From Basidiobolus meristosporus CBS 931.73 (Eukaryota > Fungi > Basidiobolomycota): DNA of 64,000 nucleotides. A program made the translations under genes and the position numbers. Shown piece by piece: positions 12,401 through 63,197 of this stretch (positions within the stretch are counted from its first letter, which is position 1; each line of letters starts with the position of its first letter). A model generated the notes under the pieces. The model saw nothing but the letters and a program-made list of their open reading frames with translations. It ran no database searches and had not been told where the DNA came from. Where the stretch lies: NCBI GenBank assembly GCA_002104905.1, contig MCFE01000476.1:1-64000 (forward strand), written 5' to 3'.

Positions 12401-15400
12401 TTAATTAGATTTTTCATTTCTTCTCCTGGCTGCATCTTTGTAGTAAGAAATTTTTGTCTCAGATACATTTTCCTAGCAGCTGCACATGATTGGTAGTTGT
12501 CATCTAGTGCCTTCCAGGCATTCTTTGCCATTTTTGCTCTTGAGCATTGAATTAGCAACTTGCCATTAACGTTAAGGCAAATGCAGTTAAAGGCACTTTG
12601 TTCTTTCTTCTAGTACTTTAAGGCTTCCTCTGCCACATTTTTAGGAGGGCATTCTTCTCCCATGACAATATCTCAAAGGCCTCTTTCTTGTAGCAGCATC
12701 TTCATCTTCACCTTCCACACCTGGTAGTTGTATCCATCCAACTTTTCAGCAGAGGGAAAAATTCCGGTAATAACAGTAGTAGACATTGCAGACAGTGACA
12801 GCCCAGAGCTTGTAACCTGTTGTTACAATCTTGGAGATATTGGAAGTGATTGGGAGGACAAGTAGATAATGTGGTATTCACTTACTGATTTCTTGAATGT
12901 AAAAGTAGAGTTTGTACTTTTACATGGTCTTGGTATAGCAAACATGTAGAACAGGATAAGGCAGGTTCCAAGAGCATGTGTACAAAGTTTGGGGCTGTTT
13001 TGACAACTTTAAGAATTTTCATGTTTGGGGTACCTGGTATTTTGGTGAAAATATTTTAAGTTAATCCCAACAGGGAATTTGATCAGTATTCTCAAGAGTT
13101 TGTAGGTAATGATCTAAGTGACTAAGTAAGGTGAATATTTAGGTGGAATTACAAATTTTTACAACAACAGCAATCTGTTTTGCAACTACTGCAAAAGTAA
13201 ATGACACATATCAGACTGGTATATTAAGCAGAGAGATAATCAGCAAGAGAAGCCTGAATATGGAAATGCTGTAACAAAAGAAAATAGACTATTCATATCT
13301 GCACTAAATATGACCACAAACAAGGATTTTCAGATGTGGTACATTGACTCTGGAGCATCTCAACACTTTACACACTAAAAAGAACTTTTTACCCATTACC
13401 AAGAAATTCCGGTTAAGAAGGTTCTAATGGGTGACAACAGCTCACCTGATGCAGTGAGAGAAGGAACAATCCAAGTAAACCTTAGAAGCAATGAAGGAGC
13501 CCATACACTGACCATTAAAGAAGTACTCCATGTACCAGAAATAGCTAAGAACATACTATCTGTAGGCAAGGCCACAGCAGAAGGACTCAGTTTCAGCTCT
13601 GACAATTTTGGATGCAAGATCACTGATCAAAATGGTGCTCCTATTGCTTTGGGTGTCAGAGATCAGACTCTTTATAAGTTGACTTATATTCCATCAAGTT
13701 TGGAAGCCAATATAAGTAACTTGAATGAATAAACACCAATGCTTTGGCACAGGAGATTTGGATATATCAATTTTGAATATTTGGGCAAAATGATCAAAGA
13801 TCAGCTAGTTTCCAGAGTAATAACTGATCCCCCAGCTAATTTGGAGCACTGTGAAGCCTGCAAATATGGGGAGCAAGCCAGACAACTGCTCAAGAGCTCT
13901 GGGTAATTCAAAACTAAAAAAAAAATTAGATTCAACTCACTCAGATCTGCAGGGACCTATGCAAAACTTATCCTTAGGCAGGATGAAGTATTTAATCACT
14001 TTTATTGATGATTATACAAGATATGCATTAGCCAACTTCATGGAGAGAAAGGAAGAAGCTCAGTCTAAGCTCAGGGAGTGTAAAGTCATAGAAGAGAGAG
14101 AAGCAGGTGAAGAAATCTAGAAAATATACTATGACAAAGGTGAAGAATATGCCTCAAACTCTTCAGCCACCTCTGCAAAATTCATGGGATAAAGTAAGAG
14201 ACTACTGTATCATACTCCCCATACCAAGGTGGAGTAACAGAGTGTGCAAAGAGATCAATAATTGATATGGCAAGATCTATGATCTGTGTTCAAAAATTAT
14301 CCCAAAATCTTTGGGCAGAGTCAGTTGCCACAGCTGTATTCCTTAAAAATAGGAGCTATAACAGAATACTTTGTGATTCTACTCCATTTGAAGTGTAGTA
14401 TGGATACAGATCAAGTGCAGTACATCTAGGAATATTTGGGCGTACAGCATATGACAAGAAACTGCCTGGAAATCAGTCAGAATTTGAGCCAAAAAGTGAA
14501 AAATAGATATGTTGGGGCTACTGCAATGAGAGTAAAGCATACAGCCTCCACAATACCAAAGCAAAGAAGCTAATCAAGTCCAGAGATATGTTGTTTGATG
14601 AAAATTCAAACTCTCACATAAAACAACATCAGATGATGACAAAAATTGGATCTCAAGTCCAGCAATGGTGAGGGTTCAATCAGAGCAAAACAATGGAAAT
14701 TCTTTCACTCCAGAGGGCTCTGTAGCTGTGGTTCAGCCTAAATCAGTGCCCAGGAGTATCCCAGAAGTGATTGTTCTAGTATCAAATGCCTGGAGATCCA
14801 ACTGGACAAAAAATAGCCTAGATTACAATATTAGTGAGGGTACAAACTTAGCCTATGCCTATTCAGTCCATATTGATGAGCACCAGACTGCAAAAGATGC
14901 CCCAAACAGCCTTGAGACAAAGTTTTGGCAATCTTCAATGACTGAGGAATTTCAGACTCTGCTGGAAAATCAAACTTGGGACTTAGTCAAATTACCAATC
15001 AACCAAAAATCAGTTGGATGCAGATGGTCTTTAAGACAAAACACAAGGCTGATAATACAATTGTAAGATACACAGCAAGACTTGTGGCCAAAGGATACTC
15101 CCAAACAAAAGGACTTGACCATACTGAGACCTTTGCACCAGTTGCCAAGTTCAATTCCATCAGATTAATGTTTGCTATTGCAGCTTAATATAAGTTTTAT
15201 ATATATATCAAATGGATGTATATTCATGATATACTAAAAAAGTACTAAATCAACAACTGTAAACCAACAGCTACCCAAATGGAGACAAATCTTAACTTGA
15301 TCAAAACTCAATCAAGTCAAGAGAGCTTGGTGCCATCCAAAAGCCCTGACTTTCCTTATCAATCTATGGTTTGCCATCTCATGTATATTACAATTGGAGC

Positions 15401-16386
15401 ACATCCAGATAACCCATATTTAGTCAGAGCTGTCAGCCAGCATAATTAGAGCTATGGTTCTGATTGGATTGCACCAGCTAAGCGGATTATTAGATATCTA
15501 AAAGGAACTGATGATATTTGCTTAAGATACATTTATCAGGACTCAGAACAGAATCTATGGGATACTCTTATGCTGATTTGGGACAAAATTTGGAAGACAG
15601 AAGATCCACCACAAGATACACCTTTCTTTATTGCCAAGGAGCAATTTCATGGAGTTCAAGAAAGCAACCAACTGAAGCACTTTTCATCTTGGAGGCAGAG
15701 TATATGGCAGCCTGTGAAGCAACAAAAGAAGCAATACACTTAAGAAAGCACTTTATAGATTTAGGTCAATGTCAAAAGACACCTATTATATTATTTCAAG
15801 ATAATCAAGGATGTATACCATTAGGTAGAAATCCAGCTTTTCATGTTAGAACTAAGCACATAGATATTAGACACCATTCTGTACACAAAGCTATAGAGAA
15901 TAATCTAGTTGGCTTAGTTTACTGTCCTCCAGATGAAATGATTGCTAACACTTGTACCAAACCAGTAGATAGAGACAAGCATGATAATCTTAGGTCAAAG
16001 TTAGGACTAGTCAATGTGAACATTTAGCTGTGTGGGAGTGTTGTAAAAATTTTTAATCCCACCTAAATATTCACCTAACTTAGTGACTTAGATCATTACC
16101 TTCAAATCCTTGGGAATACTGACTAAATTCCTTTTTGGGATTTACTTAAAAAATTTTCACCAAAATACCAGGTACCCTGAGCAAGTAAATTATCAACGGT
16201 GTCCAAACAGCCATAAACTTTGCATACATGCTCTTGGGACCTTCCTTAGCCTAATCCGCATGTTTGCTATGCCAAGACCATGTAAAAGTATAAATACTAC
16301 TTTAACATTCAATAAATCATCAAGTGAAGCCACATAATCTACTTGTTCTCCCAATCACTTCCAACATCTCCAGGACCCTTACAACA
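9467..16386 (+). mobile_element. Older Copia-A element (B1) with LTRs 9467-9816 and 16039-16386, heavily decayed
   Basis: PBS GGTTATGAGCTC at 9817, gag-pol fragments, PPT TGTGGGAG before the 3' LTR; part of RT deleted; flanks rejoin to the CMC host. Confidence 0.88.
10514..13166 (-). mobile_element. Internally deleted Copia-A element (B2) nested antisense in the B1 gag, TSD ACAGC
   Basis: LTRs 10514-10861 and 12818-13166; ACAGC at 10509-10513 and 13167-13171; RT joined to protease near 11700. Confidence 0.92.
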
Positions 16387-16770: not shown

Positions 16771-17839
16771 TGTGGTGGTGTATAGGTCTAAGGGAGAGAT
16801 ATGTCCAACACTTCTCAAGTATTTGTGTGTGGGGTGCTCACTGGGTGTGATAGCCTCTGGCAAAAGCTTGCTAGGAATACTTGGGTTCTGTCACTAATCT
16901 AATGTGATGGGGAACAAAGCCACAAACTTCTCAAGGGAAAACTATTGAGCTACAATCCCCAATTGAGTTGGCGTCTTAACAAAAGTATGTGCTGGGTTCA
17001 GTGTCCTTTGAGTAGACAATGTGCTAAAGCTTCCAAAGTCCAAACAGTTGTAGACTCCACCAGCAGGGACTAGATAAAATGCAGCTGTGGTCAATAGTTA
17101 CAAAGACAGAAAAGTATCTTTGACTGTACAAGAACAAACTTGGGAAAGAATCAAATATATTGAAAGATACCTACCCCAAGTATTGCTCATAATTAGTGCC
17201 TCTAAGGTCAGTTGGCTGTCAGCGTGGTTTCCTGGGAGTGTCCTGTAGTCTGGGGTTGGAAGTTCAGGTAGCAGCAGGTAGCAATGATCACACTAAGCAA
17301 CAAGTTGGTATATTGATAAAAGGGATGATGATTTATTGCTGAGGGATAACCTCCTTTATATACTTTTCTTACTGACAAAGTGATTACTAATCATAGTGTT
17401 CCAGAAGGTTCTGGATATCAATAGAGATCTTAATGACACCAGAATGACCTAAGAATGTTCTAAGTATGTGCCGGAAGGTTCCAAGAGGCACAGCACATCC
17501 AACCAATCAGGAATCAGTATTATGAAACCTGTGCAACATAGGGATAGCATATATGGTATGAAAGTGGTAGGGACGGTGCCATGGACTGGTCATGTGTCAC
17601 AGGTACTGGCGCAGGTACTTGCCTAATATAGAAACACTTATAGCTAGTAATCTAACCTAGAGTGACGGATAACTTATGCAATAAGGTAAGCAGCTATGAT
17701 AGTCAGCCAGCTTATGCAATAGTACTGATCAAGTAAGACAAATGGGATAAAACTAAAATAAGGGTAGTAGAGAAATAGGGAAGTAGAAAATATAAGAATG
17801 AGCACATCTGTCAGTGGGTGTCACTGTGACCCCACTACA
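16771..17839. repeat. LTR-X solo LTR (1069 bp), TSD ACAG/ATGG (ancestral ACGG)
   Basis: TGTGGTGG...CCACTACA termini; the empty paralogous site at 21562-21565 reads ACGG. Confidence 0.88.
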
Positions 17840-18921
17840 ATGGCATTGAATCAAAGCAGTCTTGTCCATGGGGCAAATAGTCCAAGGCTAAGCAGAATGG
17901 GCTTGACTTGTTGCATGACCATTATCCTTGATTCAAGCAAGCAAACAGATTTTAGGCCAGCATTGGTATTATAAGAAGGTTTCTTAAGAATAGCAGATAT
18001 TATCAAAGGTAGAAGAACAAGGGTGCCAAGGCTAAAAGCCTGCAGCTTCCCAAAGAGCTTGTCACAAGCAGGGCTAAAAGCTCCAAACAAGTGGCAATGA
18101 AACTACAGGAAGCCAGAACAGGCCAGTAATAGACAGGCAGGCAGAAACAGATGCACCAGTGCAGCATTTATCAAGGAGAAAACATAGTTCAATACAAGTA
18201 GTACTCAGTAACAGTAGCAATGAGGGACTTGACAGTGGTAAATACCCACGGCTTTCTCAGGAGCCTGTCACAAGCAAGGTTGATAGCTCCAAGCAAGCTG
18301 CAAAGAAATGTCAGGTTGATAGAGGAGTGCTGACAAGGAACAAGCAGGCAAAAATGGATGCACCAGTGCAGCATCCATCAATGCAAAAACAGAGTACAAT
18401 GCTAGAAGCACTTTGTGAAAGTAGCAGTGAAAGACTTGACAGTCATAACCCTACAAAAATAATTTGGTCCCACAGGTGGATCCAATCCGGATCATCCATC
18501 CAGATCCCATTTAGAGACCATCATAATAACAGCAGCTTGGAATTAGTGACCCTCCCAACAATCTAATAATAAGATCATGATGGTGTTTTGCAAATTTTAC
18601 AGCCAAATAAAGGGATAAAACTTGACAATTTTTAATTGGTGCTGTGACAATATTTGCATGGTATTGTTGCAGTCTTTCAGCGCTCTATTACTATTTTAAG
18701 TGGATCTAGTTGGCCAGGACTTCCAATTGCCTTATATGGCAAGAAACTTGATGGCAATTTGATGGCCTCACAGCTAGACTCTGATGGCATTTTTTGGCAG
18801 TATGATGGCCTACTGCTGGTTTTGTATAATGCCACTGTACCACTTTACCATATGATATTTCCTTTTTCTACCTCCCCTTGTGCAATTCATATATTCCACT
18901 GTAGAATCACCTTTCTTTACA

Positions 18922-21975: not shown

Positions 21976-22709
21976 AGACTTGTTCCGTTGGATAGTGCCA
22001 CATTGAGCCATGAGTGCCAAACAATGCCATAGTGTGCCAGAGAGGTCAAGTGAGCCTATACTTGGCCACAGAGTGTGAAACATAGCTCTGCATCTTCATG
22101 TAAAGCAACCCCTGTGTTTCACCCATTGCGCAGGAGAAAATCCATTTTTTGACCTTTTTTTGTGGATCAATGTAGCTCAGGATGTGTAAGAGCACAGGAG
22201 AACTGAAGATATGCATCTGGTACTCAATACCCATGGCACTCTGAATCTAGCTCCTGTAGCTTGTATCATGTCACAAAAATGAATGGCACTATCTTGGTCC
22301 ACTGGTACTATCTGGCACTATATTTAAATATTAGCCCTAAAGTAAGATCTATACAAAGCACTTAGAGTGCCAGATAGTACCAGTGGACCAAGATAGTGCC
22401 ATTCATTTTTGTGACATGATACAAGCTACAGGAGCTAGATTCAGAGTGCCATGGGTATTGAGTACCAGATGCATATCTTCAATCTGCTTGTGCTCTAACA
22501 CATCCTGCACAACATTGATCCAAAAAAAAAGGTCCAAAAATGGATTTTCTCCAACACAATGGGTGAAACACAGGGGCTGCTTTGCATGAAGATGCGGAGC
22601 TATGTTTCACACTCTGTGGCCAGGTAGAGGCTCACTTGACCTCTCTGACACACTATGGCATCATTTGGCACTCATGGCTCAATGTGGCCCTATCCAACAG
22701 AACAAGTCT
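21976..22709. mobile_element. Fold-back MITE copy 1 (734 bp, about 347-bp inverted arms, 40-bp spacer), TSD ATT/AAT
   Basis: AGACTTGTTCCGTTGG...CCAACAGAACAAGTCT; the empty site near 41785-41805 supports a 3-bp duplication. Confidence 0.93.
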
Positions 22710-24136
22710 AATAATGTGGACTCCTCTGGCACTCAGTCAAGTAAGCAATTGAGAACCTCTGTGGAGCCACAAGCTGACCATTATGCTCAGGCAGATGAAA
22801 ATGTAGCAAACGCAGTACCCTCAGTGGAAGATCAGCAAGTGGCCATGATATCATCACCACCACCCATATTAGCAAGTATGTTGTCAGCTCATACCAAAGC
22901 ATTTATGTAGCAATTAGGTGCAGTGGCTGATAGTATAGATGCAATGGCCCAGGCAAATCAGGAAGTAGTCCAGAAACAGTATGAGTGGAAAATATTTGTA
23001 GAGCAATCAATATCCCAGGTAGAGAAAGCAGTGTCATTGCTGCAAAGAAGGAACTCAAGTAGCTCAATGACATAGCCAAGAATTGAGCCATTTCCCAATG
23101 TAACAGCAGAGGAACACTGTACAGTTGTTGAAGCACAACAACAGTGCCCAAAGATAAAGCCCACAGAAAAGCCTATCACTGTGTGGGAGGGAGACAATGT
23201 GGTACTTATACCAAAGCCTAAAAATCAAAAGACATTGAAGATCTGTTAAGCTGTTGAGTGCAATAATGAAGAATGGGCTAATATACAAGAGGCCATCAGA
23301 AGTCTAGCATGCCATCACCATACAGCTGGCATACCATGGGACCATCAGCAACTCAAGGCCATGCAGAATGCACTTGAATTGTTCCATGAGCATTAGACTT
23401 GTTCCATCGTACCATGCCAGGGCGCGCGGCGTGATCCGCGGTTGCAAAGAACAATCAGGCGCGATATTATAGCTACCAGAAGGCAGGATTGTTCTGGGAC
23501 AATTTCGCACTATGCGGGACAATCTTGCACACTATGGCACAATCTGACACAATGAGGTTGGCGTGGATGATTGCGCCAACTTGTAATGTTTGCATCACGT
23601 GCGCAATCGGATACCGCTATAATGGCAGGTAAAATCCGGTATTTGGATATGTTTCTTTAATGTAAATGGAAATAAATGTGTATCACACTATAAACTACAC
23701 TAATACTTACCATTTTGGTTACCCTCACTCCAATTGGACAGTATCTCAGTGGTTAATTGGTCCAAAAGTATCCTGAAGCTGGCAGCCCCCAATTGGCTCA
23801 TTGACTACTGAAAAGCTACCTGATTTGCCATCAAATATCCCATTTTGCCCATTGAACAAGTAAATCCCTGATCCTAGTGATTGGGCAAGGTGTCATAGCT
23901 AGCACGCAAGCAATTGTGTAGGTGCAAAACAGATCCAATAGCTGCACTAGTATTACAGATGACTTATATATATGCAGGGTGTTTATTTATAGGGGTTCTG
24001 TCTCAAATGTGAGACGACCTTGATATTACTTATATCAAAAATTTGATGATCTCTGATTTGCAATGGCTTGATTTGGATTGCAAAAAAAAAGGGTTGTTGG
24101 GATCATTACAAATGTGAGCGATTTAAAGCAATCGCA

Positions 24137-25384
24137 TCATCTTCTCCTGGGTTTTTTTCTCACAGGGATTACTACTGAAGCATTTGGTAGTGACTCACTT
24201 TGCACACCTATACTACTTCCTGGCTGACTATCATCTTGGCTACTTGTGTATTTGTAGTCAGTATTTTGCCTCCTAGTTAATGAGTGCGATGCTGCAGCTT
24301 GGCCACGCTGAATTGCTCTGACTGAACCAACTGAACCGGCCTGTTGTGCCACGCGCTGACGCGTTCTTTTACTTGCCAAGGGCTCCGGTGGTTGAGGCAC
24401 TTCATGTTGGTCATCATCAGTCAGTTCACCAGAAGTAACTTGCTGATGGTCAGGTGAAACGGCACGTGCAGGCGTGCCTTGATGTGTTGAGATGGCCCTT
24501 GGCTGAGTTTGATGTGATGCCGCATGTTGATGTGACTCGGTCCGCTCCAATGGACTTGTGTCTAAATGAGCAGTTTGGTGAGTTCTCGTAGTTTTGCTCT
24601 GAAGTGTGCGTGTTGACCCAACGCGCATTGACTCGATGCGGGGCGTTCTGGTAAAGGGTGTTGGTGTGGTCTGGACTGACGTTTGCCGGCACGCTGTAGT
24701 TGCAAGAGATGGTAGGGAATCCAGCAAGGCGTGCTGGTGTGATCTGGACAATGTTGCTCACGGTCTGTATTCTTCCTCCTGAAGCTCTCCATCTGATTCC
24801 TCAAGGTATTCACTTACCCTCTGTCTGATACTTTGGAGCTGTTGCCTGGATGATTCCTGTGTATATTGCTCTTGGAAGCCACTTAGCTCTACTAATATAT
24901 CACGTAGTACATTAGTCATTTGAGGCAAAAACTCATTCAAAATCTCTTTGGTTCCCAAAGTTGAGGCACAAACAGACGTGTCCAGCCCATACTGTGCAAA
25001 TTGCGCGCAAAATCGTTCCCGTGCGGCTTCTTTGTCAAATCCTCTCACTCTCAGCTCATTCTTGATTTCAATACTTGTCTTGTTATATATCTTTTTACAT
25101 ACATTGGCTGGCATCTTGATGTAGAACTCATGCCACAGCTTTCTACTCAAATTCTTCCATCTTTGTTGACTCTCTGAGGTATCTAGTTCTGCTAGATTAA
25201 TCAGTAGTGCCCAAATATCTGTATGAAGGCTCATCATAGACACTTGGGCCATACTAAAATCATTTGGCAAGAACTTGAACGGATCCAACATTGACTTTTC
25301 CGTTCCGGACCGCGTTTGTGAGCTGGGGGATGGGTTTTGTCTGGGTTGTACTAAAGATGAGTTGAGGCTTGGTATGGGGACCAT
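24137..25384 (-). CDS. ORF2 of the PHIS element (about 415 aa; one in-frame TGA at 24758-24760); helical N-half, disordered C-half, basic NLS-like tail
   Basis: ORFs 24758-25384 and 24137-24751 are in the same frame, separated only by TGA-GCA-ACA; ends PVRKKPRRR; tail conserved in the decayed copy at 58505-58930. Confidence 0.75.
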
Positions 25385-25715
25385 AGCAACAGATTTGGAT
25401 ACTTATACAGCAGTATATTGGCATCAACCTGGTCTTTTATGAAATATATATGAAAACTAAAGTGATTGTTGAATTTTCCATATATTATGCATGATGCATC
25501 TTGGATCGCGTTGATATGGATCAGATCACATCAATTGCAGATTTCCTATTTGATTATAGACCTATGATTAAAGCATCAATAAAAGTACCAAGGCATTGTT
25601 TGCGGATGATTTTTGCAACATAATGATGGGATACATGGCAATTGATGGAGATTTAACCATAATGTGTTAAAAATCAGATAAATAACGCAGATTGCGCCGA
25701 ATTGATTCAAACCGC

Positions 25716-26794
25716 TGTGGTGGTGTATAAGTCCAAAAGGGCAAAATACAGCCAACACTTCTCAAGTGTGAATGTGTGTGGGGTGTTCACTGGGTGCGAT
25801 AACCTCTGGCAAAAGCTTGCTAGGAATACTGGGTCTTTTATCTAATCTAAGTGATGGGGGATAAAGCCTCAAGCTTGTCAAGGGAAAACTATTGAACTAC
25901 AATCCCCAACTTAGTTGGCGTCTTAACAAAAGTTTATAATGGCTTCGACGTCCTTTGAGATGACAATGTACTAAAGCTTCCAAAGTCAAAACAACTGTAA
26001 ACTCCACCAACAGGGACTTGATAAGAATGCAGCTTTGACCAATAGTTACAAAGACTGAAAAGTATCTTTGCCTGTACAAGAACAAACTTGGGAAAACAAA
26101 CAAATATAATAAAATATACCTACTCTGAGTATTCCTCACGAGTGGTGCCTCCAAGGTCAGTTGGCTGTCAGCGCGGTTTCCTGGGAGTGTCGTCAGATCT
26201 GAGTCAGAAAATAGTGGTAATAGGTAGCGGTGATCTCGCTAATCAATAAGTCGGAATATTGGAAGAGGGATGATTTATTTTAAGGGATAGCCTCCCTTAT
26301 ATACTTTTTTGCTGCTCAATTTCTTGCTAGAAAATACTTTCCGGAAGTTTCCAGAAGGTAGTAGACAACCAATCATGTCTTTGTGTACTAAAAATAGCGC
26401 AAATTCTTGGCGGATTGTTCCATGAGACATAGTAGTACCTAGCCAATCAGGTAGTGGTAACATGAAACCTCTGTGTCATGTGGTTGCCTCTTATGGTAGT
26501 GAGATGGGGGATTATGAAACCAAGATGGTCACGTGACATGGGCACTGTTGGGGTACTTGCCTTATAAGGTAACTATCTTATCTTGGCATCTCGGCAAGGA
26601 ATAAGAATAGCTTGTGCAATGGGTTAATAGGGACAAATAGCTTGTCAGGTTGCATAGTAATAATCACATAGACAAAAATAGGAAATATTGCAAATTTGGG
26701 ATGATAATAATATAGGCGGGGTAATCCTTTTTAGGGAAGTGAATGCATAAGAATGAGCACATCTGCCTGTGGGTGTCACTGTGACCCCACTACA
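25716..26794. repeat. LTR-X solo LTR (1079 bp), TSD CCGC
   Basis: TG...CA termini; CCGC at 25712-25715 and 26795-26798. Confidence 0.92.
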
Positions 26795-26826
26795 CCGCCT
26801 CCATACAATCATCCATCAATTTTAAT

Positions 26827-27711
26827 ATGACTTACTCATCTGAATGGTCTTTTCTCATCAATCCCATCACTACCACTGGATTTCCTTTTGACACACTGGA
26901 GGAGATCTATTCCAAGTACTGTGGACCATCAACCCCAATCTACTCAAGGAGATCCCTTGTTAAGCTTCTCTGCTATTACAAGAACTATTGCCCTACAAGG
27001 TTTCATCCCACCATCCATGGCAACAAAAGTCCTAGAAGCTTTCATTCCCAGCTGACAGCAATGGAGAACCACCTTGCAGAGGGTATGAATGACTTAGAGC
27101 AAGCTTGGAATACTAGGTTCAGAAGCTCCAATAGACTTCCATATCCCAGAGTGTTCAGCAACAGGTTCCATATCAGGAGTATTTTGGATACCTTCCCAGT
27201 GAGGATTAACAGACCTTCTAGAGGGCAGAGGCACTTTTATTCTGGCAAGTACAAGGCACACTGTGTGAAGTTTCAAGCACTGTCTGACATTGAGGGTAAC
27301 ATCATCTGGTTTAGTGGGCCATTTGCTGGAAGTAGGCATGACAAAGCACTCTGGGTAGAGAATCATCCTGAATTCAGTAGAGGGGAGAAATGTATGGCAG
27401 ACTTGGCCTATATAGGAGAGAATTGTCAGAGATTAGGATGTATTACAGCTTATAGGAAGCCAAGGAATGGTGTGCTTAGCAGGAAGCAGAAGCTCTACAA
27501 TGAGATATTTGATCATTTCAGAGTAAGGGTAGAGCACACATTTGGATATCTGAAGAGATTCAGCATATTGGCAGGAAAATACAGAGGAAAGTCATATATA
27601 GGTGAAAACAGCAGAATAGGTAAAATAGTTAAGATACTTATTAATGCACAGTATGTTAATACAAGAAGACATCCACTGAGAGAAATGTGTCTGGAGCATT
27701 ATGAAGAGTAA
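26827..27711 (+). CDS. Intact DDE transposase, PIF/Harbinger-IS5-like (DDE_Tnp_4 type), 294 aa
   Basis: ILDTFPVRINRP, YSGKYKAHCVKFQ, SGPFAGSRHD, ADLAYIG, KPRNGVLS..Q.LYN, RVRVEHTFGYLKRFSIL..KYR. Confidence 0.93.
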   Translation: MTYSSEWSFLINPITTTGFPFDTLEEIYSKYCGPSTPIYSRRSLVKLLCYYKNYCPTRFHPTIHGNKSPRSFHSQLTAMENHLAEGMNDLEQAWNTRFRSSNRLPYPRVFSNRFHIRSILDTFPVRINRPSRGQRHFYSGKYKAHCVKFQALSDIEGNIIWFSGPFAGSRHDKALWVENHPEFSRGEKCMADLAYIGENCQRLGCITAYRKPRNGVLSRKQKLYNEIFDHFRVRVEHTFGYLKRFSILAGKYRGKSYIGENSRIGKIVKILINAQYVNTRRHPLREMCLEHYEE

Positions 27712-29629
27712 ATAAAGCAAGGAAAGCACTATTCTGAGCAACATAAGTAAGATTGAGTAAAATTACCAGTAACTGTATCATACCACTGGCATCATGGTAG
27801 AAACTATAGTGCCAGATAGTGCTGTAGAGTGCCAGATCAATCCGGCACTATAAACAGGCAGGCACTATGTGGCACTATCCAACGGAACAAGTCTATTATC
27901 CTGGATTCCAACAGGCAAATGGATTTTGGGCCAGCATTGGCATACTAAGAAAGTATCTTGAGAATAGCAGAAATTATCAAAGGCAGCAGAACAAGGGTGC
28001 CATGGCTAAAAACCAGCAGCTTCCTCAAGAGCCTGTTACAAGCAGGGCCAAGCAGGCAGTCATTGAAGCACCAGCACAATATTTATCAAGGAAAAAGTGT
28101 AGTACCACTCAAGAAGCCCCCAGTCAAAGTAGCAGTGAAGGATCTGGCAGTGATAAAAACCAGCTGCTGTTACTGGAGCCTGTCACAACTATGGTTGAGA
28201 GCTGAAAACAAGCTGAAAAGAAACACAGGTTGCCAGAAGAGTACCAGCAAGGGACAAGCAGGCCAAAACAGATGCATCAGAGCAGAATTTATTGAGGAGA
28301 AAATGTAGTTCTTTACAAGAAGCATTCAGACAAAGTAGCAGTGAAAGACCTGACAGTGATAAAGGAAAAGGTAAAGGGAAAAATGTCTACCCAAGCCTGA
28401 GACAGGGAGGCATGCAGAAGAAACTGCAGTTCTCCGCAATTAACACCACAAGCCAGGAACAGACTGAATCCCATCATAGCCAAGAAGAATTACCGACAAG
28501 AAAACAGCTGTTGGAAGCACAGCCAGTTCAGCTTCACTCCAGCAAGGTAGAAGAGTTTGATGAAAAAAGCAATTTGTCTACCACAGCATCCACATCCTCC
28601 ACAGCCTCCATTGTTGACAGAGTGGGGATCCCACTGCCAGACAAGGCTACAATGTCAAGAGCTCAAAAGACTATCACAATGCCTTCAGTGGAGCTTTGGA
28701 ACATTAATAGGCACACCAAGAGGTTGCAGCACTTCTTCAGGAGCAGTGCTCAAGAAAATGCACTGGAATATTGCAAGGATTTATTGCAAAGACTAGCAGA
28801 TAAGACGCTAGACCTTGCAGTGCTGGCTGAAGACCAGGATGTGTGGGAACCAGTGAATGAACAGTGGCATAAAGCCGTTGGGCTCCTGCCAAAGTCATGC
28901 AACCAGAGCATTACAACAGAAATACTTATTGAGTGGTGGATTTTAATGAAGTTACTTGCTGAGTGTGGGGTTGGGCTTAATGTTAGTGTAGGGTATAGAG
29001 ACTTGTATAGGTCTATACAATTGGCAATTGAGGTACAACTGAAGTTTCAATGGAAATAAATCAATTTGTATGCATGAAAAGTAAGAGAAATGGTTGAGGC
29101 AGGAACTAAGGAGTGTGAAAAAGAGGCAATAGCCAATTAACTCACACAAACATAGGAGGCAATAGAGTGTCTGGGATCAGAAAGTGAGCAAACTGACTGG
29201 GAACCAATCAAAAGGCACTTATACATTGTTGTGATGAAAAATTTTGACAAAGTCTTTTGTGAAATCTGGGGTGCAATTATTTTTCATTGGTCTCTGGACA
29301 GTGTCCTGACAAGATCAGTATCTCTTAGTCATGGGACATTAACTTTGTGAAGGCCTTTTGATGGGATCATCTCAATAGTTTTTCATAGGGATAATGGTAA
29401 AGGTAAACAGAAAAGGTCTTCCAAAGTCAGAGACAGGGAGCCTGAGGAAAAAGCAGCAGTTCTCAGCAGTTAATGCTGTCATCCCAGAACAGGCTGAGTC
29501 CCATCATAGCCCAGAAGAATTACCAACAAGACATTAGTTGTTTTCTCAAGTGTTGGAGGTGCAGCCAGTGGAACTGGGCTCCAGTGAGGTAGATGAGTTT
29601 GCAGAGAAAATCAATTTATCTGCCATCAC

Positions 29630-30003: not shown

Positions 30004-30348
30004 TGTTGTAGCAGTCTTGGCAATATTGAAAGTGAATGGGAGAACAAGTAGATTATGTGGTTTCACTTAATTATTTATCAATGTTAAGTAGTATTTATAA
30101 ATTTACTTGGTATTGGCATAACAAACATGTAGAATAGGCTTAGGAAGGTCCCAAGAGCATGTGTGCAAAGTTTGGGGCTGTATGGACAACTCAGAGAATT
30201 TTATGTTCTGGGTACCTGGTATATTGGTGAAAATACTCTAAGTAAATCCCAACAAGGAGTCTGGTCAGTATTCACTTGGATTGGAAGGTATTGATCTAAG
30301 TGACTAAGTTAGGCAAATATTTAGGTGGAATTACATACTTCTAGAACA
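30004..30348 (-). repeat. Copia-A solo LTR (decayed, no TSD match)
   Basis: Homology to 2472-2821. Confidence 0.85.
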
Positions 30349-31300
30349 GTTCTATCCCCCTTTATATGCTCTGCAGTCTGATAAATGTTGGTCATGAATA
30401 ACTAGCCTTGTCTTATTGATCAGCACCCAAGTCCTTTCCTGGTCCTCCCTAGCCCATCTCTACTCTTCTGCCTTAGATCCGCTGATAACACTATCCCCAC
30501 ACCTTCCACTGTAGGCAGAGTGGAGATCACACTGACGGACAAAGCAACAACATCAAGCACTCAAAGTCTATCACAATGTATAGGAACCAGTGAGTAAGCA
30601 GTGGCATAAAGCCACAGGGCTCCTACAGAAGTCATGGAAAACGGGACATTGCAGCATAAGTTCCTATTGAATAAAGATTTTTATGGAGTTGCTTTTTGAG
30701 TGTGGGGCTGGGCCTAGTGTTAGTGGTGAGTATAGGGACTTGCATAAGTCAATATAATTGGCAATTAGAGTAAAACTGAAGTTTCAACACAAATAAAGCA
30801 ACTTGTATGTATGCAAATTAAGAGAATTGGTTGAGTCAGGAAGTAAGGAGTATGAAAATGAGCCATTAGCTAATCATTGGACACAAGTGTAGAAGCTGAT
30901 TGGGTGTACATGATCAAAAAGTGAGAGAATTGGTGGGGACCATTCAGATGCCACTGTTGTATTGTTGTGGTGATGAGTTTTGACTCAGTTTTTTGCAAAT
31001 CTGGGGGGCAATTACTTGTCAACAGTGCTTGCATAGTGTCCTGATAGGATCAATACCTTGTAGTCACAGGACTTTATTCATGTGATGATCTTTTGATGGT
31101 GTGGTGAGGCATAAGTCCAAGGGAAAGATACATCCAACACTTCTCAAGTGTTTTGTGTGTGGGGTGTTCACTGGGTGCAAGAACCACTGGCAACAGCTTG
31201 TTGGGAATACTTGGGTTCTCTTTCTACTCAAACATGGAGGGGAATAAAGTCAAAAGCTTGTCAAGGGAAAGCTATTGAGCTACAATCCCCAACTCAGCGG

Positions 31301-32370
31301 TGTGATGGTGTATAAGTCCAAGGGAGAGATATGTCCAACACTTCTCAAGTGTTTTGTGTGTGGGGTGCTCACTGGGTGCAATAACCTCTGGCAAAAGCTT
31401 GCTAGGAATACTTGGGTTCTGTCTCTAATCTAATGTGAACAGGAATAAAGCCATAAGCTTGTCAAGGGACAACTATTGAGCTACAATCCCCAACTTAGTT
31501 GGCGTCTTAACAAAAGTATGTGCTGGGTTCAGCGTCCTTTGAGATGACAATGTACTAAAGCTTCCAAAGTCAAAACAACTGTAAACTCCACCAGCAGGGA
31601 CTTGATAAGAATGCAGCTGTGGTCAATAGTTACAAAGAAAGAAAAGTATCTTTGCCTGTACAAGAACAAACTTGTGAAAGAATCAAATATAATAAATTAT
31701 ACCTACTCTGAGTATTCCTCACCAGTAGTGCCTCCAAGGTCAGTTGGCTGTCAGTGCGGTTTCCTGGGAGTGTCCTGTGGTCTGGGGTTGGAAGTTCAGG
31801 TAGCAGCAGGTAGCAGTGATCACACTAATCAACAAGTTGGTATATTGATAAAAGGGATGATGATTTATTGTAGAGGGACAGCCTCCCTTATATACTTTTC
31901 TCACTGGCTAAGTGATTACTAATCATGGTGTTCCAGAAGGTTCCGGATATCAATAGAAATCTTATTGACATCAGAATGACCTAAGAATTTTCTAAGTAGG
32001 TGCCGGAAGGTTCCAAGAGGCACAGCACATCCAACCAATCAGGAATCAGTATTCTGAAACCTGCGTAACATAAGGATACCATATATGGTATGGAAATGGT
32101 AGGGATGGTGACACGGGTTGGTCATGTGCCGCGGGTACTGGCGCTGGAACTTGCCTAATATAGAAGCACTTATAGCTAGTAATCTTACATAAAGTGAGGG
32201 GTAACTTATGCAATAAGGTAAGCAGGTGTGATAGTCAACTGGCTTATGGGATAGTACTGATTGGGTAAGACAAATGGGATAAAACTAAAATAAGTGTAGT
32301 AGAGATATGGAAAGTAGAAAATAAGGGAATGAGCACATCTGTCAGTGGGTGTCACTGTCATCCCACTACA
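31301..32370. repeat. LTR-X solo LTR nested in LTR-X, TSD GCGG/GCAG
   Basis: TGTGATGG...CCACTACA; host LTR sequence resumes at 32375. Confidence 0.9.
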
Positions 32371-32742: not shown

Positions 32743-33476
32743 AGACTTGTTCTGTTGGATAGGGCCACATTGAGCCATGAGTGCCAAATGATGCCATAGT
32801 GTGCCAGAGAGGTCAAGTGAGCCTCTACCTGGCCACAGAGTGTGAAACATAGCTCCGCATCTTCATGCCAAGCAGCCCCTGTGTTTCACCCATTGTGTTG
32901 GAGAAAATCCATTTTTGGACCTTTTTTTTTGGATCAATGTTGTGCAGGATGTGTTAGAGCAAAAGCAGATTGAAGATATGCATCTGGTACTCAATACCCA
33001 TGGCACTCTGAATCTAGCTCCTGTAGCTTGTATCATGTCACAAAAATGAATGGCACTATCTTGGTCCACTGGTACTATCTGGCACTATAAGTGCTTTGTA
33101 TAGATCTTACTTTAGGGCTAATATTTAAATATAGTGCCAGATAGTACCAGTGGACCAAGATAGTGCCATTCATTTTTGTGACATGATACAAGCTACAGGA
33201 GCTAGATTCAGAGTGCCATGGGTATTGAGTACCAGATGCATATCTTCAGCTCTCCTGTGCTCTTACACATCCTGAGCTACATTGATCCACAAAAAAAGGT
33301 CAAAAAATGGATTTTCTCCTGCGCAATGGGTGAAACACAGGGGTTGCTTTACATGAAGATGCAGAGCTATGTTTCACACTCTGTGGCCAAGTATAGGCTC
33401 ACTTGACCTCTCTGGCACACTATGGCATTGTTTGGCACTCATGGCTCAATGTGGCACTATCCAACGGAACAAGTCT
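32743..33476. mobile_element. Fold-back MITE copy 2 (734 bp), TSD ATT
   Basis: ATT at 32740-32742 and 33477-33479; arms 32743-33089 and 33130-33476. Confidence 0.95.
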
Positions 33477-34191: not shown

Positions 34192-34924
34192 AGACTTGTT
34201 CCGTTGGAGAGTGCCACATTGAGCCATGAGTGCCAAATGATGCCATAGTGTGCCAGAGAGGTCAAGTGAGCCTCTACCTGGCCACAGAGTGTGAAACATA
34301 GCTCCGCATCTTCATGCCAAGCAGCCCCTGTGTTTCACCCATTGTGTTGGAGAAAATCCATTTTTGGACCTTTTTTTTTGGATCAATGTTGTGCAGGATG
34401 TGTTAGAGCACAAGCAGATTGAAGATATGCATCTGGTACTCAATACCCATGGCACTCTGAATCTAGCTCCTGTAGCTTGTATCATGTCACAAAAATGAAT
34501 GGCACTATCTTGGTCCACTGGTACTATCTGGCACTATAAGTGCTTTGTATAGATCTTACTTTAGGGCTAATATTTAAATATAGTGCCAGATAGTACCAGT
34601 GGACCAAGATAGTGCCATTCATTTTTGTGACATGATACAAGCTACAGGAGCTAGATTCAGAGTGCCATGGGTATTGAGTACCAGATGCATATCTTCAGTT
34701 CTCCTGTGCTCTTACACATCCTGAGCTACATTGCTCCACAAAAAAGGTCAAAAAATGGATTTTCTCCTGTGCAATGGGTGAAACACAGGGGTTGCTTTAC
34801 ATGAAGATGCAGAGCTATGTTTCACACTCTGTGGCCAAGTATAGGCTCACTTGACCTCTCTGGCACACTATGGCATTGTTTGGCACTTATGGCTCAATGT
34901 GGCACTATCCAACGGAACAAGTCT
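34192..34924. mobile_element. Fold-back MITE copy 3 (733 bp), TSD AGT
   Basis: AGT at 34189-34191 and 34925-34927; arms 34192-34538 and 34579-34924. Confidence 0.95.
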
Positions 34925-35049: not shown

Positions 35050-36620
35050 AAGCATCACCAACAATGGTGTATGGTTTCCAGGAGTTGTTTTTGGCATCCT
35101 AACCTTTACACTTGGCAAAATAGAGGCAATTTGGCTCTTCTCCATACTTATACTTTTACATGGTCTGGGCACAAGAGGTCCATAGAATAGGTCTGAGAGG
35201 GTCTTAAGAATATGGGTGCAAAGTTTGGGGTTGTTTGGACAGCTTATCAAAATTTTATGTTAGGGGCACCTAATATTTTGGTGAAAGTATTCCAACCAAA
35301 TCACAACAAGGAATTTGATCAGTATTCTCTAAGATTTTAGGTAATGATCTAAGTGACCTTGCTAGGCAGATATTTAGGTGGAATTACAAATTTCTACTAC
35401 ACTCCCACTCAACTAAATGTTCAAACTGACTAATACTAATTTTGACCCAAGATATTCAAATCTGTCTCTAGCTAATGGTTTGGTGAATATGTCTGCAATC
35501 ACTTCATCCAAAGAACAGTAAGCTAAGTTAGCTTTGTTACTCTTTAAAGCATCACATCTGAAATTGTGTCTAATATCTATATGCTTAGTTCTAGCATGAA
35601 AAGTTAGATTTCTATTTAATTTTATTAATCCTTGATTATCTTGAAATAAAGTTACAGGTGTTTTTGACATAGGCCTGAATCTTGAAAAAAGTTTCCTTAA
35701 CCACATTGCTTTTTCATAGCTTCACAGGTTGCCATATGTCTTTGTGCTAGAAAGGGCTACACTTGGTTGCTTTATTGAATACCATGAAATTCCTCCATTA
35801 CAGTAAAGAAAGGTGAATTCTGTGTTGGACATTCTGTCTTCCAAATTTTGTCCCAACTTGCACCAGAGTATCCAGCAAGATCTTGTTCTAAATGCTTATA
35901 GCTGTACCTAAAGCAGATATCAGCAGTTCCCTTTAGGTATCTAAATATCCACTTAACTGCTGTAATAAGATCAGATCCATAGTTCTGATTATGCTGGCTG
36001 GCAACTCCCACTAAATATGAGATATCTTGATGTGGTCAAAGCATGCTTTGTATCAGACTACCAGCCATAGATTGATAAGGGTAGTTGGGGCTTTTGAATG
36101 GCACCAAGCTCTCTTGAATTGGTAGAGCTTTGACCAAGTTAAGGTTTGTCTCCAATGGGTTAGCTGCTGGTTTACAGTCCTTTGTTTGGTACATGTTAAG
36201 TATATCTTGAATATAACTGCATTTGCTTAGGGTGATAATATGGGTACTTTGATCTATGGAGAACTTTATCCCCAAGTGGTAACTGAGTTCTCCTAGATCA
36301 GACATCTTGAATTCTTTAGATAGACTGGATTTAATCACTTCTAATGTTTCTAGGTTATTGCCAGCTATAATAATATCATTTGCATATAGAGCTACTAGAG
36401 CTGGATTTGCTCTATATGGCTTATTGTATATACTATAGTCAGTATTACTCCTTTTGAAGCTCAAAGATTTGAACTAAGAGTCTATCTTGCAATTCTAGGC
36501 ACTTAGTTATTATTCAAGACTGCACAGATTTTTTCAGCTTGCAAACCAAAGAGGGTTATATTGGTCAAGAAACCAATTAGGCTCATCTAAATACATGCCA
36601 TCATCAAGTTATCCATCCAA
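35050..36620 (-). mobile_element. Decayed Copia-A 3' part (LTR to 35401, PPT, RH/RT fragments)
   Basis: CTCCCACTC PPT after the LTR; ORF fragments TKHIDIRHNF and LYANDIII. Confidence 0.85.
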
Positions 36621-38524: not shown

Positions 38525-38890
38525 TGGAGTGGGGTCACAGTGACACCCACTGATAGATGTGCTCATTCCCATATTTTCTACTTCCCAATTTTCTACTACC
38601 TTAATATTACTTTTATCTCATTTGACTTACTTGAGCAGTACTATCCCATACACCAGCTGACTATCACACCTGCTTACCCTATTGCATAAGTTATCCCTCA
38701 CTTTATGTAAGATTATTTGATCTGAGTGCTTCTGTCCTAAGCAGGTGCCCATACCAGTACTTTTAACACATGACCAGAGTACTTTACCATCCCTGCCATT
38801 TACATACCATATATGGTATCCCTGTGTCACACAGGCTTCAGAATATTGATCCTTGATTGGTTGGGTGTGCTGTACTCTTGGAACAGCTGT
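38525..38890. repeat. Truncated LTR-X (reverse orientation), flanked by ACGT
   Basis: TGGAGTGGGGTCACAGTGACACCCAC terminus. Confidence 0.8.
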
Positions 38891-38899
38891 TTTCTTGTT

Positions 38900-41620: not shown

Positions 41621-41659
41621 ATCTTGGGAGTGTTTATGTTGCCCAGAAATAAAGCAAAG

Positions 41660-57762: not shown

Positions 57763-58940
57763 AGACTTGTTCCATCATACTGTGCTAGGGTACACTGCAC
57801 AATTCACCGTTTCTAAGAACAATTGGGTGCAATATTGTAGCTACCAGTAGCCAGGATTGCTCTTGGACAATTTTGCACCATGTGGGACAGTCCTGCTCAC
57901 TATGGCACAGTTGGACACTATGAGGTTGGCACAGATGATTGCACCAACTGGTAATGGCTGCATTACATGCACAATTGGATACCACTATTATGGTCAATAA
58001 ACTCCAATATTTTGATATGTTTCTTTAATGTAAATGGAAGTAAATGTGTATCACACTACAAACTACACCAGTACTTACCATTTTGGCTCCCATCACTCCA
58101 ATTGGATAGTATATCAATGCTTAATTAGTCCAAAAGTATCCTGAAGCTGTCAGCCCCTAATTGGCTCTTTGACCAATACACAGGCTACCTGATTTGCAAG
58201 CAAATATTCCACTTTGTTCATTCAGCAAGTAATTCCCTGATCCTGGTGATTGGATAAAGTGTCATAGCTAGCACGCAACCAATCAGATATGTCCAAAACA
58301 GATAAAATGGCTGCACTGGTGTTACAGATGATGTATATATATGCAGGGTGTTTATTTATTGGGGTTCTGGCTCAAATTTGAAATGACCTGGATTTTATTT
58401 ATATCAAAAATTCAGTGACCACACATTTGCAATGGCTTAATTTGGATTGCAAAAAGAAATGTGTTGATTGGATTATGACCAACAATAGCAATTCAATGCA
58501 ATAGCATAATCTTCTCCTAGGTTTTCTTCACATAGAGATTATGTTGAAATACTAGAGAGATATATTGGAAGTGAATTGGAGAATTAGAAGATTTACATGA
58601 TATTCACTTGATGTTTTATTGAGTTGCAACACAGTATTTATACTTATTGCAGAACTACATAAATGTGACTACTTGGTCATTATCAGGGGAGTCTCAGGAG
58701 TGCATGTGCCAAGTTTCAGCTCATTTGGACAAGTTTTAGATTTTCCTAAAATTCTGTACTTCTCTATTTCCTAATAATTAGTAAATATCTTACAAACTAA
58801 TTTCCATGTTGATAATCTGAAATATATCAGTTCACTAAGTGCTAGCTCATAATATATTAATAATTAGGTGGACTCCGAATTATTTCAACAGATTACTGCT
58901 GAAGCATTTGGTAGTGATTCACTTTGCACACCTAAACTAT
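57763..58940. mobile_element. Decayed left part of a second PHIS element copy
   Basis: AAT then AGACTTGTTCCATC; collinear with 23395-24215 with CpGs mostly lost; right end not found. Confidence 0.88.
58542..58890 (-). repeat. Copia-D solo LTR (349 bp), TSD GATTA
   Basis: TGTTGAAATA...TATTTCAACA; GATTA on both sides. Confidence 0.92.
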
Positions 58941-59523: not shown

Positions 59524-61952
59524 CCCTGTGCAAATAGTATGGTTCCGCAGGTGGACCCAATTTATGTCTGCTGTCAGGATCCAAGAGTGAGGCTGTCATA
59601 ATTTCAGCAGCCTGGAATCCTCAACCCTCTGAACAGTCTTGTGGCAGGATTGTGATGGCAATTTGCTGTCCTCACTTCTAAATTTCAGGCAGTAACTTGG
59701 TGGTGTCTTTTGATGGAACATACATTGCATTCAGGTAGCTTTAATGTAGTCAACATTTATTTCAACAGCTATAACTGGCTAATACTTGCATTTGCCTTGT
59801 ATGGTAAAGACTTGACAGTGCTATCATAGTCTTGATGTAGACCTCTACTGACATTATGATAGTATGGCAACCTATAGCTGGTTCTGTATAGTGCTACAAT
59901 ACCTTTTTACCAAATGGCATTTTATTTTTCTACCTCTCCTTGCACCTTTCATTTATTTCACTACATAATCATGCCTCTTGATTTGCTTATTTACTGCTAC
60001 CATGGGTATTCCACAAGTAGATTGAGTCAGTTAAAGCTATGGCCTCCTGCTGGCAAACATGCAACTGACACAATTTCATCCCCTTAACTTACAGCTTTTC
60101 AATATGATACTTGCCAAGTTGCCAAGTAGTGTCTAGTACACCAACACCTCAAGGCCAGCATACTATGGGACTATTGGGAGCTCACGGCCAAGCTGAATGT
60201 GCTTGACTTGCTCCATGAGCATTATCCTGGACTTAAACAGGTAAATGGTTTTTGGGCCAGCAGTGGTATGCTAAGAAAGTATCTCAAGAGTATCAGAAAC
60301 TACTGAAGGCATAAGAACAAGGGTGCCATGGCTAAAAACCAGCAGCTCCTTAAAGAGCTTGTTACATGCAGGGCTGAAAGCTCCATATAAGTGGCAAAAA
60401 AATGTTGGGTTGCCAGAAGATTGCCATTGATGGCAAGCAGGCAGAAACGGATGCGTCAGTGCAGCATTGATAAAGGAAAAAACATAGCTCAATATAAGAA
60501 GCACTCAGTCAAAGTAGCAGTGAAGGACCTTGCAGTGATAAAAACCTGCAGCTTTCTCAGGAGCCTGTCAAAAACAGGGCTGAATGCTCAAATCAAGTGG
60601 CAAAGAAATGTCAGGTTGCCAGGAGAGTGCCATTCAGAGACACATGTATCAGTGCAGCATTTAGCATAGTTCTATATAAGAAGCACTCAGTTACAGTGGC
60701 TGTGAAGGAGCTGAGTGCAATACAGTCCTATGGCTTTCTCAGCAGCCTGACACAAGCAGGACTGAAAGCTCTAAATGTGTGGCAAAGAAACGTCAGGTTG
60801 CTGGGAGAGGGATGGCAAGGGACAAGCAGGCAAAAATGAATGCACCTATGCAGCATGCTTCAAGGAGGAAATGTGGTACAATTCAAGAAGCACTATGTCA
60901 AAGTAGTATTAGAAAACCTCACAGTGATAAAGGTACAGGTTAAGAGAGAGTGTCTACCCAGGCCAGAGACAGGGAGTCATGAGAAAAAGCTGCAGCTCTC
61001 ACCAATTAACACTGTCAGCCCAGAACAGGATGAATACCATTAAGCCAAGAAGAGTTACCAACAAGAAAACAGCCGTTTTTTCAAGAGCCAAAAGTGCAGT
61101 CAGTTGAGCTACACTCCAGTGAGGTAGATGAGCTTGCAGAGAAAAGCAGATTGTCTACCACTGCCTTCATGTCCTCCATTGAACACAGAGTGTAGATCCC
61201 ACTGACAGACAAAGCAACAGCATCAAGAGCTTAAAGACTATCACAATGCCTACAGAGTGAAATCTAGAATATTAATACTCACACCAAGAGGCTGCAGCAC
61301 TTCTTCTAGAGCAGGCTCAAGAAAATGAACTTGAACATTGCATGACTTATTGCAAAGACTGGCAAATGAGGTTCTAGACCTTGCAGTGCTGGCTAAAGAC
61401 CAGGACATATGGGAATCAGTGAATGAAGAGTGGCACAAAGTTTTAGGGTTTGCGCCAAAGTCATGGAAAAAGGGCATTGCAGTAGAAATGCTTTTGAGTG
61501 GTGGATTTAAATGGAATACTTGATGAGTGTGGGGCTGGGCTTAGTATTAGTGTTGGGTATAGGGACTTATATAGGTCAGTATCATTGGCAATTGAAGTTC
61601 AAAAGAAGCTTCAATGGAAATAAACCAAATTGTATGCATAAAAAGTAAGAGAATTGGGTGAGTTAGGTAGAAAGGACTATGGAAAAGAGGCAGTAGCCAA
61701 TCAATTGACACAAATGTAGGAGGTTACTTCTTGTCTGTGATCAGAAAGTGAGAGAGCTGGCAGAGTATTAACTAAAGGCCACTTTTCAATTGTTGCAACA
61801 AAGAATTTTGACTAAGCTTTTTGTAAAATCTAGGGTTCAATGATTTTTTATGGGCTTTCCGCAGTGTTCAGATAGGATCAATACCTCTTGGTGATGGGAT
61901 TTTCATTTTGTGACAGCCTTTTGATGGGATTTTCACAGTTATTTCTCATGGG
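59524..61952. mobile_element. Internally deleted CMC copy 3 (left end, tnp2 tail, ORF-Y, right end)
   Basis: Decayed termini CCCTGTGCAAA and TTTCTCATGGG; collinear with the ends of copy 2. Confidence 0.65.
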
Positions 61953-62900: not shown

Positions 62901-63197
62901 GAGAATACAATATCAATTAGCACTCATGTCAAGCTTTGTAATCAACTACTCACTGCTTCTGTAAAGAATTACAACTAAACATATGAAGAAAAAGTGTCAG
63001 TCAAGTACTAGCAAAAAACTAGTTGAATACCAGCAGATTAATAGATGTATCCCAAGTGTGAATCATTTCATAGGGGCCTGGAACAGTCCAAATAACAAAT
63101 TTGCCACAAAGAATAAACAACAAGACAAAAGCTATCTTCTCTAAGTATGGAAGCTTCACCATATGCAACACACTGCATTGAGCTTGATAAGCTATCA

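Follow-up and report, generated by a model that had tools for sequence, protein, structure and literature searches.

We examined the first 64,000 nucleotides (nt) of contig MCFE01000476.1 (forward strand; assembly GCA_002104905.1) of the fungus Basidiobolus meristosporus CBS 931.73, a stretch that we refer to as the window. At 23395-27894 lies a 4.5-kb DNA transposon bounded by short inverted repeats. It carries two genes that point away from each other: on the plus strand, a gene for a DDE transposase of 294 amino acids (aa), and on the minus strand, a second open reading frame (ORF2). A solo long terminal repeat (LTR) is nested between them, and three short elements with related ends lie elsewhere in the window (Table 1). 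We consider it very probable that this element is a new family of Pangu, a group within the PHIS superfamily, and thus a eukaryotic cut-and-paste transposon of a known kind.

The boundaries of the element are set both by its ends and by copies of the surrounding repeat into which it did not insert. The element starts with AGACTTGTTCC and ends with GGAACAAGTCT, which together form a perfect 11-bp terminal inverted repeat (TIR). Allowing at most one mismatch, we counted nine occurrences of the 11-mer in the window, where 1.7 are expected; none of the shuffled sequences reached nine. These nine ends belong to the 4.5-kb element, to three elements of 733-734 bp that we treat as miniature inverted-repeat transposable elements (MITEs), and to an isolated left end at 57763. 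Fusing the flanks of the 4.5-kb element and dropping one ATT gives a sequence that aligns, through the junction, to three other copies of the surrounding repeat; in every one of them a single ATT stands at that point (60221-60223, 17921-17923 and 62252-62254). Because these empty sites carry one ATT, the 4.5-kb element must have inserted with a duplication of exactly 3 bp. A 3-bp gain is likewise seen when the MITEs at 21976-22709 and 32743-33476 are compared with two and three empty sites, respectively.

All five insertions of the family in the window are flanked by A-N-T (ATT, AAT, ATT, AGT and a one-sided AAT), for which we estimate a chance of ~6e-6 from the base composition of the window; a TWA (TTA/TAA) duplication is found at none of the five. 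We also tried a 12-bp TIR with a 2-bp duplication and rejected it, as moving the boundary by one base leaves AT and TT at the flanks and no direct repeat. Since a shift of one base destroys the repeat, a 3-bp ANT duplication is the sole consistent reading. An earlier sequence-only reading of this DNA had proposed the 11-bp TIRs, an ATT duplication with an empty site near 60225 and A-N-T flanks at all five insertions; direct reading of ends and flanks bears out all three proposals, and two further empty sites can be added. The isolated left end at 57763 opens an older, truncated copy, the parts of which at 57763-58541 and 58891-58939 are 82-94% identical to 23395-24215.

Table 1. The transposon, its internal features, its MITEs and its best empty site, in window coordinates.
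Feature	Position	Strand	Basis or remark
MITE copy 1, 734 bp	21976..22709		flanks ATT/AAT; two empty sites give AAT as target
Left target duplication copy, ATT	23392..23394		three empty sites with one ATT each
Left TIR, AGACTTGTTCC	23395..23405	+	sequence read, 11-mer search
Left subterminal region, repeated CACTAT and (G/C)ACAAT	23406..23560	+	82% identical to truncated copy at 57763
ORF2, second half, S/T/Q/R/P-rich	24137..24733	-	same frame as first half; exon 2 if intron real
Candidate 84-nt intron, AGG/GTAAGT...CACCAG/	24734..24817	-	holds only in-frame stop, TGA 24760-24758
ORF2, first part	24818..25384	-	ATG 25384; predicted all-helical
Left part of original divergent intergenic (promoter) region	25385..25715		sequence read
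Nested solo LTR, TGTGG...CTACA, 1079 bp, sense	25716..26794	+	insertion foreign to the transposon
Transposase gene, single exon, 294 aa	26827..27711	+	N-terminal helical (helix-turn-helix-like) part and RNase H-like DDE core
Right subterminal array, 8-mer ATAGTGCC/GGCACTAT, both orientations	27790..27883	+	conserved in the relative L001
Right TIR	27884..27894	-	sequence read, 11-mer search
Right target duplication copy, ATT	27895..27897		flank read, empty sites
MITE copy 2, 734 bp	32743..33476		flanks ATT/ATT; inserted in another member of the nested LTR's family; compared with three empty sites
MITE copy 3, 733 bp	34192..34924		flanks AGT/AGT
Truncated older left-end copy	57763..58939	+	preceded by AAT, interrupted by another repeat
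Single ATT, best paralogous empty site	60221..60223		others at 17921-17923 and 62252-62254

The transposase gene is a single exon. Its product has two Pfam matches, DDE_Tnp_4 (E 3e-23) and the weaker DDE_Tnp_1. A HMMER search of 1.84 billion representative proteins returned 1622 relatives at E <=1e-3 and only 22 at E <=1e-30. The closest, itself 294 aa long, is 62% identical and the next ones are 43% or less, all of them environmental sequences. Because homologues align from residue 4-6 through the C-terminal end, the single-exon ORF can be taken as full length. All 37 sequences in an alignment of relatives keep the catalytic residues D121, D192 and E236, and the AlphaFold model built with this alignment has N-terminal helices followed by an RNase H-like alpha/beta core (predicted local distance difference test score, pLDDT, 93.3; predicted template modelling score 0.92). 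Comparison of the model with the PDB by Foldseek gave weak matches (all E >0.05), nearly all of which were DDE transposases or integrases, with Tn5 the best (probability 0.94, template modelling score 0.48). A sequence search of the PDB found no match, and an exact look-up of the transposase sequence found no identical record. Against the 62% relative, nonsynonymous divergence (dN) is 0.29, synonymous divergence is saturated and third-position identity is 44%; this combination of a dN of 0.29 with saturated synonymous sites shows that the transposase has evolved under purifying selection. The domain match, the invariant triad and a pLDDT of 93 uphold the earlier description of the protein as an intact 294-aa DDE transposase.

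ORF2 runs on the minus strand from an ATG at 25384 to 24139, a frame of 415 codons with one in-frame TGA at 24760-24758 (codon 209). The head-to-head second gene of the sequence-only reading corresponds to the first 208 codons of this frame: a divergent minus-strand ORF is indeed present, but the TGA lies inside a longer frame, so that the gene is either spliced or truncated. The 207 codons past the TGA are open in the same frame, for which we estimate a chance of ~1e-4 from the local base composition. We considered whether the ORF at 24137-24751 might be a separate frame or a compositional artefact and ruled this out, as it lies in the frame of ORF2. A consensus donor (AGG/GTAAGT) lies 57 nt upstream of the TGA and is paired with an in-frame acceptor (CACCAG/). 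GGTAAGT occurs six times over both strands of the window, and we estimate the chance of finding it at the donor spot at ~0.003. This arrangement suggests an 84-nt candidate intron at 24817-24734, the removal of which would eliminate the ORF2 stop; the in-frame joins were screened for absence of stops only, and the two ORF2 pieces were searched separately. Transposase genes are interrupted on contigs L004 and L009, which makes introns in such elements plausible. A second GGTAAGT is found at 23705-23711(-), beyond the ORF2 stop, and recurs at 58073-58079(-) in the truncated copy, which is 82% identical here; the minus-strand gene may have one more intron or exon there, or the motif may be a chance occurrence.

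Neither ORF2 piece matches a Pfam family at E up to 1, Myb/SANT included, and no homologue of the first piece was found. Between ORF2 and the upstream ORFs of relatives no similarity could be detected; its alignment with that of L004 is tryptophan-spaced and non-significant (E 9). A single-sequence structure model of the first piece is all-helical but poor (pLDDT 48.7).

Between the two genes, and ending 32 bp before the transposase ATG, sits the nested repeat, with TG..CA ends and a CCGC duplication at 25712-25715 and 26795-26798. Comparison of the window with itself finds further copies of this ~1.07-kb family at 16771-17839, 31301-32370 and 43987-45017(-) and partial ones near 40610-41633; partial tandem copies are also present at 31099-31495. 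The copy at 43987-45017(-) has a purine tract before it and a Gypsy-type RNase H ORF (46833-47435) upstream. On this basis we read the family as an LTR, probably that of a Gypsy-type element, and the copy within the transposon as a solo LTR. With the LTR and one CCGC removed, the transposon measures 3417 bp and its divergent intergenic region ~360 bp, close to the 230-270 bp that separate the two genes in relatives. In L001, which is the 62% relative, the noncoding stretch before the ATG can be aligned over the LTR insertion point without a break, though weakly (z ~2.7). The earlier description of a full-length two-gene element holds for the ends, the duplication and the divergent layout, but its 4500 bp are interrupted by the LTR and ORF2 contains the in-frame TGA; in annotation, what looks like one unit of 4.5 kb should be recorded as a transposon of 3.4 kb with a solo LTR nested in it.

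The three MITEs are 98.5-99.3% identical to each other and 89% self-complementary, and by their sequence they are long, hairpin-like, near-palindromic elements. Their first 28 bp are those of the right end of the 4.5-kb element, and the sequences diverge beyond. Both empty sites of the copy at 21976-22709 read AAT, which implies that its left duplication copy, now ATT, has mutated. The near identity of the three MITEs indicates that the family moved recently, so the suggestion that the lineage had been recently active holds for the family, two MITEs also having perfect duplications; the autonomy of the 4.5-kb copy itself is uncertain in view of the nested LTR and the ORF2 stop.

Near its right end the transposon carries an array of the 8-mer ATAGTGCC. 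The window has 18 exact copies of this 8-mer, where 2.6 are expected, and all are divided between the right subterminal 90 bp (four) and the MITEs (14). The array is found in the same arrangement before the cut-off end of L001, with about three quarters identity over the last 95 bp compared with 44% at third codon positions. Given this conservation above the third-position level, we mark ATAGTGCC as a likely, predicted protein-binding site. The motifs of the left end (CACTAT and ACAAT) differ from it, making the two ends asymmetric.

Nearly all relatives of the transposase are found on short metagenome or read-archive contigs, and a metagenome scan with closer alignment identified seven short loci. 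A divergent upstream ORF is present in four relatives, showing that the head-to-head layout is conserved. One relative, L012, is a complete element of 2052 bp with an 18-bp TIR, AGAGTTGTTCTGGTTTTT, the beginning of which (AGAGTTGTTC...) matches the window TIR at nine of the first ten bases; its flanks are ATT and ACT. Some relatives are extended at the C-terminus: P0012 has a chromodomain (Pfam Chromo, E 9e-11), and P0009, P0010, P0011, P0014, P0018, P0026, P0027 and P0042 share another extension of ~60 aa with a W-W...V motif and no Pfam match. The window transposase has neither. The fusions hint that some members of the clade may direct their integration to chromatin.

In a quick maximum-likelihood tree, the window protein pairs with P0001 (support 99) within a subclade that includes the L012 transposase, and a long branch separates this subclade from a cyanobacterial group. 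The nearest named proteins are cyanobacterial transposases with HTH_Tnp_4 and DDE_Tnp_4 domains, ~35% identical over half of the protein. A word-index protein search with the transposase yielded three matches only, and a profile search was dominated by cyanobacterial insertion sequence (IS) transposases because one of these was in the query alignment, and gave no named eukaryotic reference. A scan of prokaryotes, with one genome each from 185,579 species, gave partial and distant actinobacterial matches only, and a scan of IMG/VR gave no relative. A search for TIRs in the distant relatives L004, L009 and L013-L016 found no convincing ends. In L009 a AGAGTTGT repeat was considered as a TIR and rejected, since it lies in a fold-back at the contig end that overlaps the transposase reading frame. 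This fold-back (L009:2076-2598; complementary over 72 nt at 96% and over 30 nt at 97%, with a loop of 323 nt) covers the 3' end of the intron-bearing transposase gene and looks like an assembly artefact rather than a TIR.

The PHIS superfamily has been split by the composition of the target duplication, which is TWA in PIF/Harbinger, AT in ISL2EU, absent in Spy, ANT in Pangu, CWG in NuwaI and C/TNA/G in NuwaII (Han et al., 2015, Mobile DNA 6:12; PMC4482050). The TIRs of Pangu elements are 11-40 bp long and start with AG or GG, and the elements average ~3487 bp in length; they encode a DDE-only transposase of 268-537 aa (Table S3 of that paper) with DDE_Tnp_4 and have a second ORF without a known motif (PMC4482050). 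The group sits next to IS5 in the published tree, and in Repbase many of its members go under the names Harbinger or Harbinger2 (PMC4482050). It comprises 34 families, two of which were judged potentially active, and the paper reports no transposition assay for any Pangu family (PMC4482050).

The window element has the same organization. Its ANT duplication is documented by empty sites, its AG-starting TIR is a perfect 11-bp AGACTTGTTCC (18 bp in L012, starting AGAGTTGTTC), its transposase matches DDE_Tnp_4 well inside the published limit (E 3e-23; limit E below 1e-4) with an intact triad, and this DDE-only protein is accompanied by ORF2, which matches no Pfam family and has an in-frame TGA unless spliced, in ~3.4 kb of original sequence. 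Because duplication, TIR, two-ORF layout and length all agree with the published traits, we place the element in Pangu. The best NCBIfam model for the transposase, IS5 family NF033581, together with the cyanobacterial nearest named proteins, fits the place of Pangu beside IS5. What sets it apart from described Pangu elements is its status as a new family (closest protein 62%), the nested solo LTR and a 734-bp near-palindromic MITE derived from the right end. The sequence-only reading had named ANT as the signature of Pangu, which matches Han et al., 2015 (PMC4482050), and had offered a Pangu-like element or a new PHIS lineage; the traits agree with the former, and the data do not call for the latter.

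Other identities for the element have to be weighed against this placement. A domesticated HARBI1-like gene is ruled out by the TIRs, duplications and empty sites. A canonical PIF/Harbinger element, with A-N-T flanks due to chance or to mis-set ends, would account for the shared superfamily, Pfam domain, 3-bp duplication, presence of MITEs (Tourist-like in PIF/Harbinger) and pairing of a transposase with an accessory protein. Yet canonical elements combine TWA with a Myb/SANT/MADF second protein, whereas here A-N-T is found at five of five insertions and TWA at none, the empty sites fix both the boundaries and the 3-bp gain, a one-base shift of the ends leaves no direct repeat, and ORF2 has no Myb/SANT match; we regard this identity as very unlikely. 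The remaining groups have a related DDE core and part company elsewhere: ISL2EU in its AT target and its THAP and YqaJ domains, neither of which is present here, Spy in its AAATTT target without duplication, as opposed to the 3-bp gain at our empty sites, and NuwaI and NuwaII in CWG or C/TNA/G duplications, which the window element does not have, and in a Myb/SANT second ORF, for which ORF2 gives no Pfam match. A bacterial IS5-family insertion sequence, present through contamination or recent transfer, has in its favor the best NCBIfam match, the cyanobacterial nearest named proteins and the common plan of a helix-turn-helix plus DDE transposase of ~300 aa. It is nevertheless extremely improbable: the NCBIfam match reaches 52 bits against a cut-off of 140, the cyanobacterial proteins are ~35% identical over half of the protein and lie across a long branch, and the 185,579-species scan of prokaryotes returned partial, distant matches. 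Moreover, IS5 elements have one gene and a prokaryotic host, while this element has two genes and accompanying MITEs in a window packed with Copia and Gypsy elements, in which it is nested and which are nested in it.

Some points do weigh against the Pangu assignment. The ANT signature comes from only five insertions, and the duplication of the MITE at 21976-22709 and the flanks of L012 are imperfect. The placement is one by published group traits. Finally, ORF2 is without a homologue or domain, has a poor model (pLDDT 48.7) and contains an in-frame stop unless spliced. The element could represent a separate PHIS lineage that arrived at ANT targets independently of the Pangu clade and would be Pangu by duplication but not by descent. 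Its short transposase (294 aa), the AGA(C/G)TTGTTC termini that it has in common with L012, the chromodomain or other C-terminal extension of some relatives and the confinement of close relatives almost entirely to short metagenome or read-archive contigs are compatible with such an origin. We nonetheless find it unlikely, as Han et al. define the groups by duplication and list Pangu transposases of 268-537 aa with DDE_Tnp_4 (PMC4482050), and nothing observed here conflicts with Pangu. A bolder version, which we hold to be similarly doubtful, would make the window clade a distinct PHIS lineage between bacterial IS5 and the named eukaryotic groups, with the present copy still mobile and its transposase driven by the captured solo LTR. 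Such a lineage may be characterized by ~290-aa helix-turn-helix plus DDE transposases, AGA(C/G)TTGTTC termini and ATAGTGCC arrays, and may further include a hypervariable divergent partner gene, a chromodomain in some members and a mostly metagenomic occurrence.

A different question, bearing on the activity of the copy and not on its identity, is whether this Pangu element is a dead relic, with the MITEs moved by an intact copy elsewhere. The LTR would then have cut the transposase off from its promoter, and a nonsense mutation would have truncated ORF2. The solo LTR 32 bp before the ATG and the TGA at codon 209 of 415 are what such a history would leave behind; in addition, the MITE ends match the right end of the element over the first 28 bp only, and the one further copy that the window contains is a truncated one of 82% identity. 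Set against this are the intact transposase ORF, DDE triad, TIRs and duplication, as well as the in-frame acceptor and its GTAAGT donor, 57 nt before the ORF2 stop (chance ~0.003), and the LTR, being in sense orientation, could conceivably supply a promoter itself. We take the possibility of a relic seriously, though we lean slightly against it.

Our working model for the Pangu element is as follows. The native form is ~3.4 kb long, with two genes divergently transcribed from a central region of ~360 bp and encoding the 294-aa helix-turn-helix plus DDE transposase and a fast-evolving, predicted helical partner protein. By analogy to PIF/Harbinger and IS5, the transposase would recognize the ends and subterminal motifs, probably aided by the ORF2 protein, and the excised element would integrate at A-N-T through a 3-nt staggered cut, repair of which would yield the 3-bp duplication. 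Later, a probably Gypsy-type LTR retrotransposon landed in the central region and collapsed to the solo LTR. The same transposition machinery would recently have mobilized the 734-bp hairpin-like MITE, both ends of which copy the autonomous right end.

The surroundings of the element are a dense nest of transposable elements, with Copia sequences at ~2833-6936, 48158-50685 and 63019-63990 and a Gypsy fragment at 46833-47435; no tRNA or Rfam family was found in the window. The repeat that hosts the transposon has copies at 27895-29616, 60160-61930, 17883-18448, 62191-62389 and 38882-39177(-) that are 73-87% identical, and it carries a 255-aa ORF (28292-29059) with no Pfam match. A repeat of ~350 bp (76-98% identical) occurs at 733-1082, 2472-2821, 6809-7157, 9475-9816, 10513-10861, 12818-13166, 16039-16386, 30004-30351 and 35145-35401. 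Because these copies flank Copia coding regions (2833-6936 and 11986-12558), they are probably the LTRs of Copia elements that lie clustered here, nested or recombined. A further repeat of ~367 bp (89-99% identical) is present at 47774-48140, 51505-51873, 52459-52826, 56812-57178 and 59010-59153, and its copies around the Copia ORFs at 48158-50685 are probably their LTRs; one fragment of this family adjoins the truncated transposon copy at 58939-59153.

Pangu has been thinly studied, and the locus described here is suited to a first mechanistic look at ANT targeting by PHIS transposases, as the copy has an intact transposase, its empty sites are clear, ATAGTGCC is a conserved candidate for the binding motif and the partner MITE is young. 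The most useful leads that it offers are the conserved ATAGTGCC array, the possibly LTR-driven transposase and a mostly metagenomic clade with chromodomain fusions. Like Spy before it, the element might also be developed into a new vector for gene transfer.

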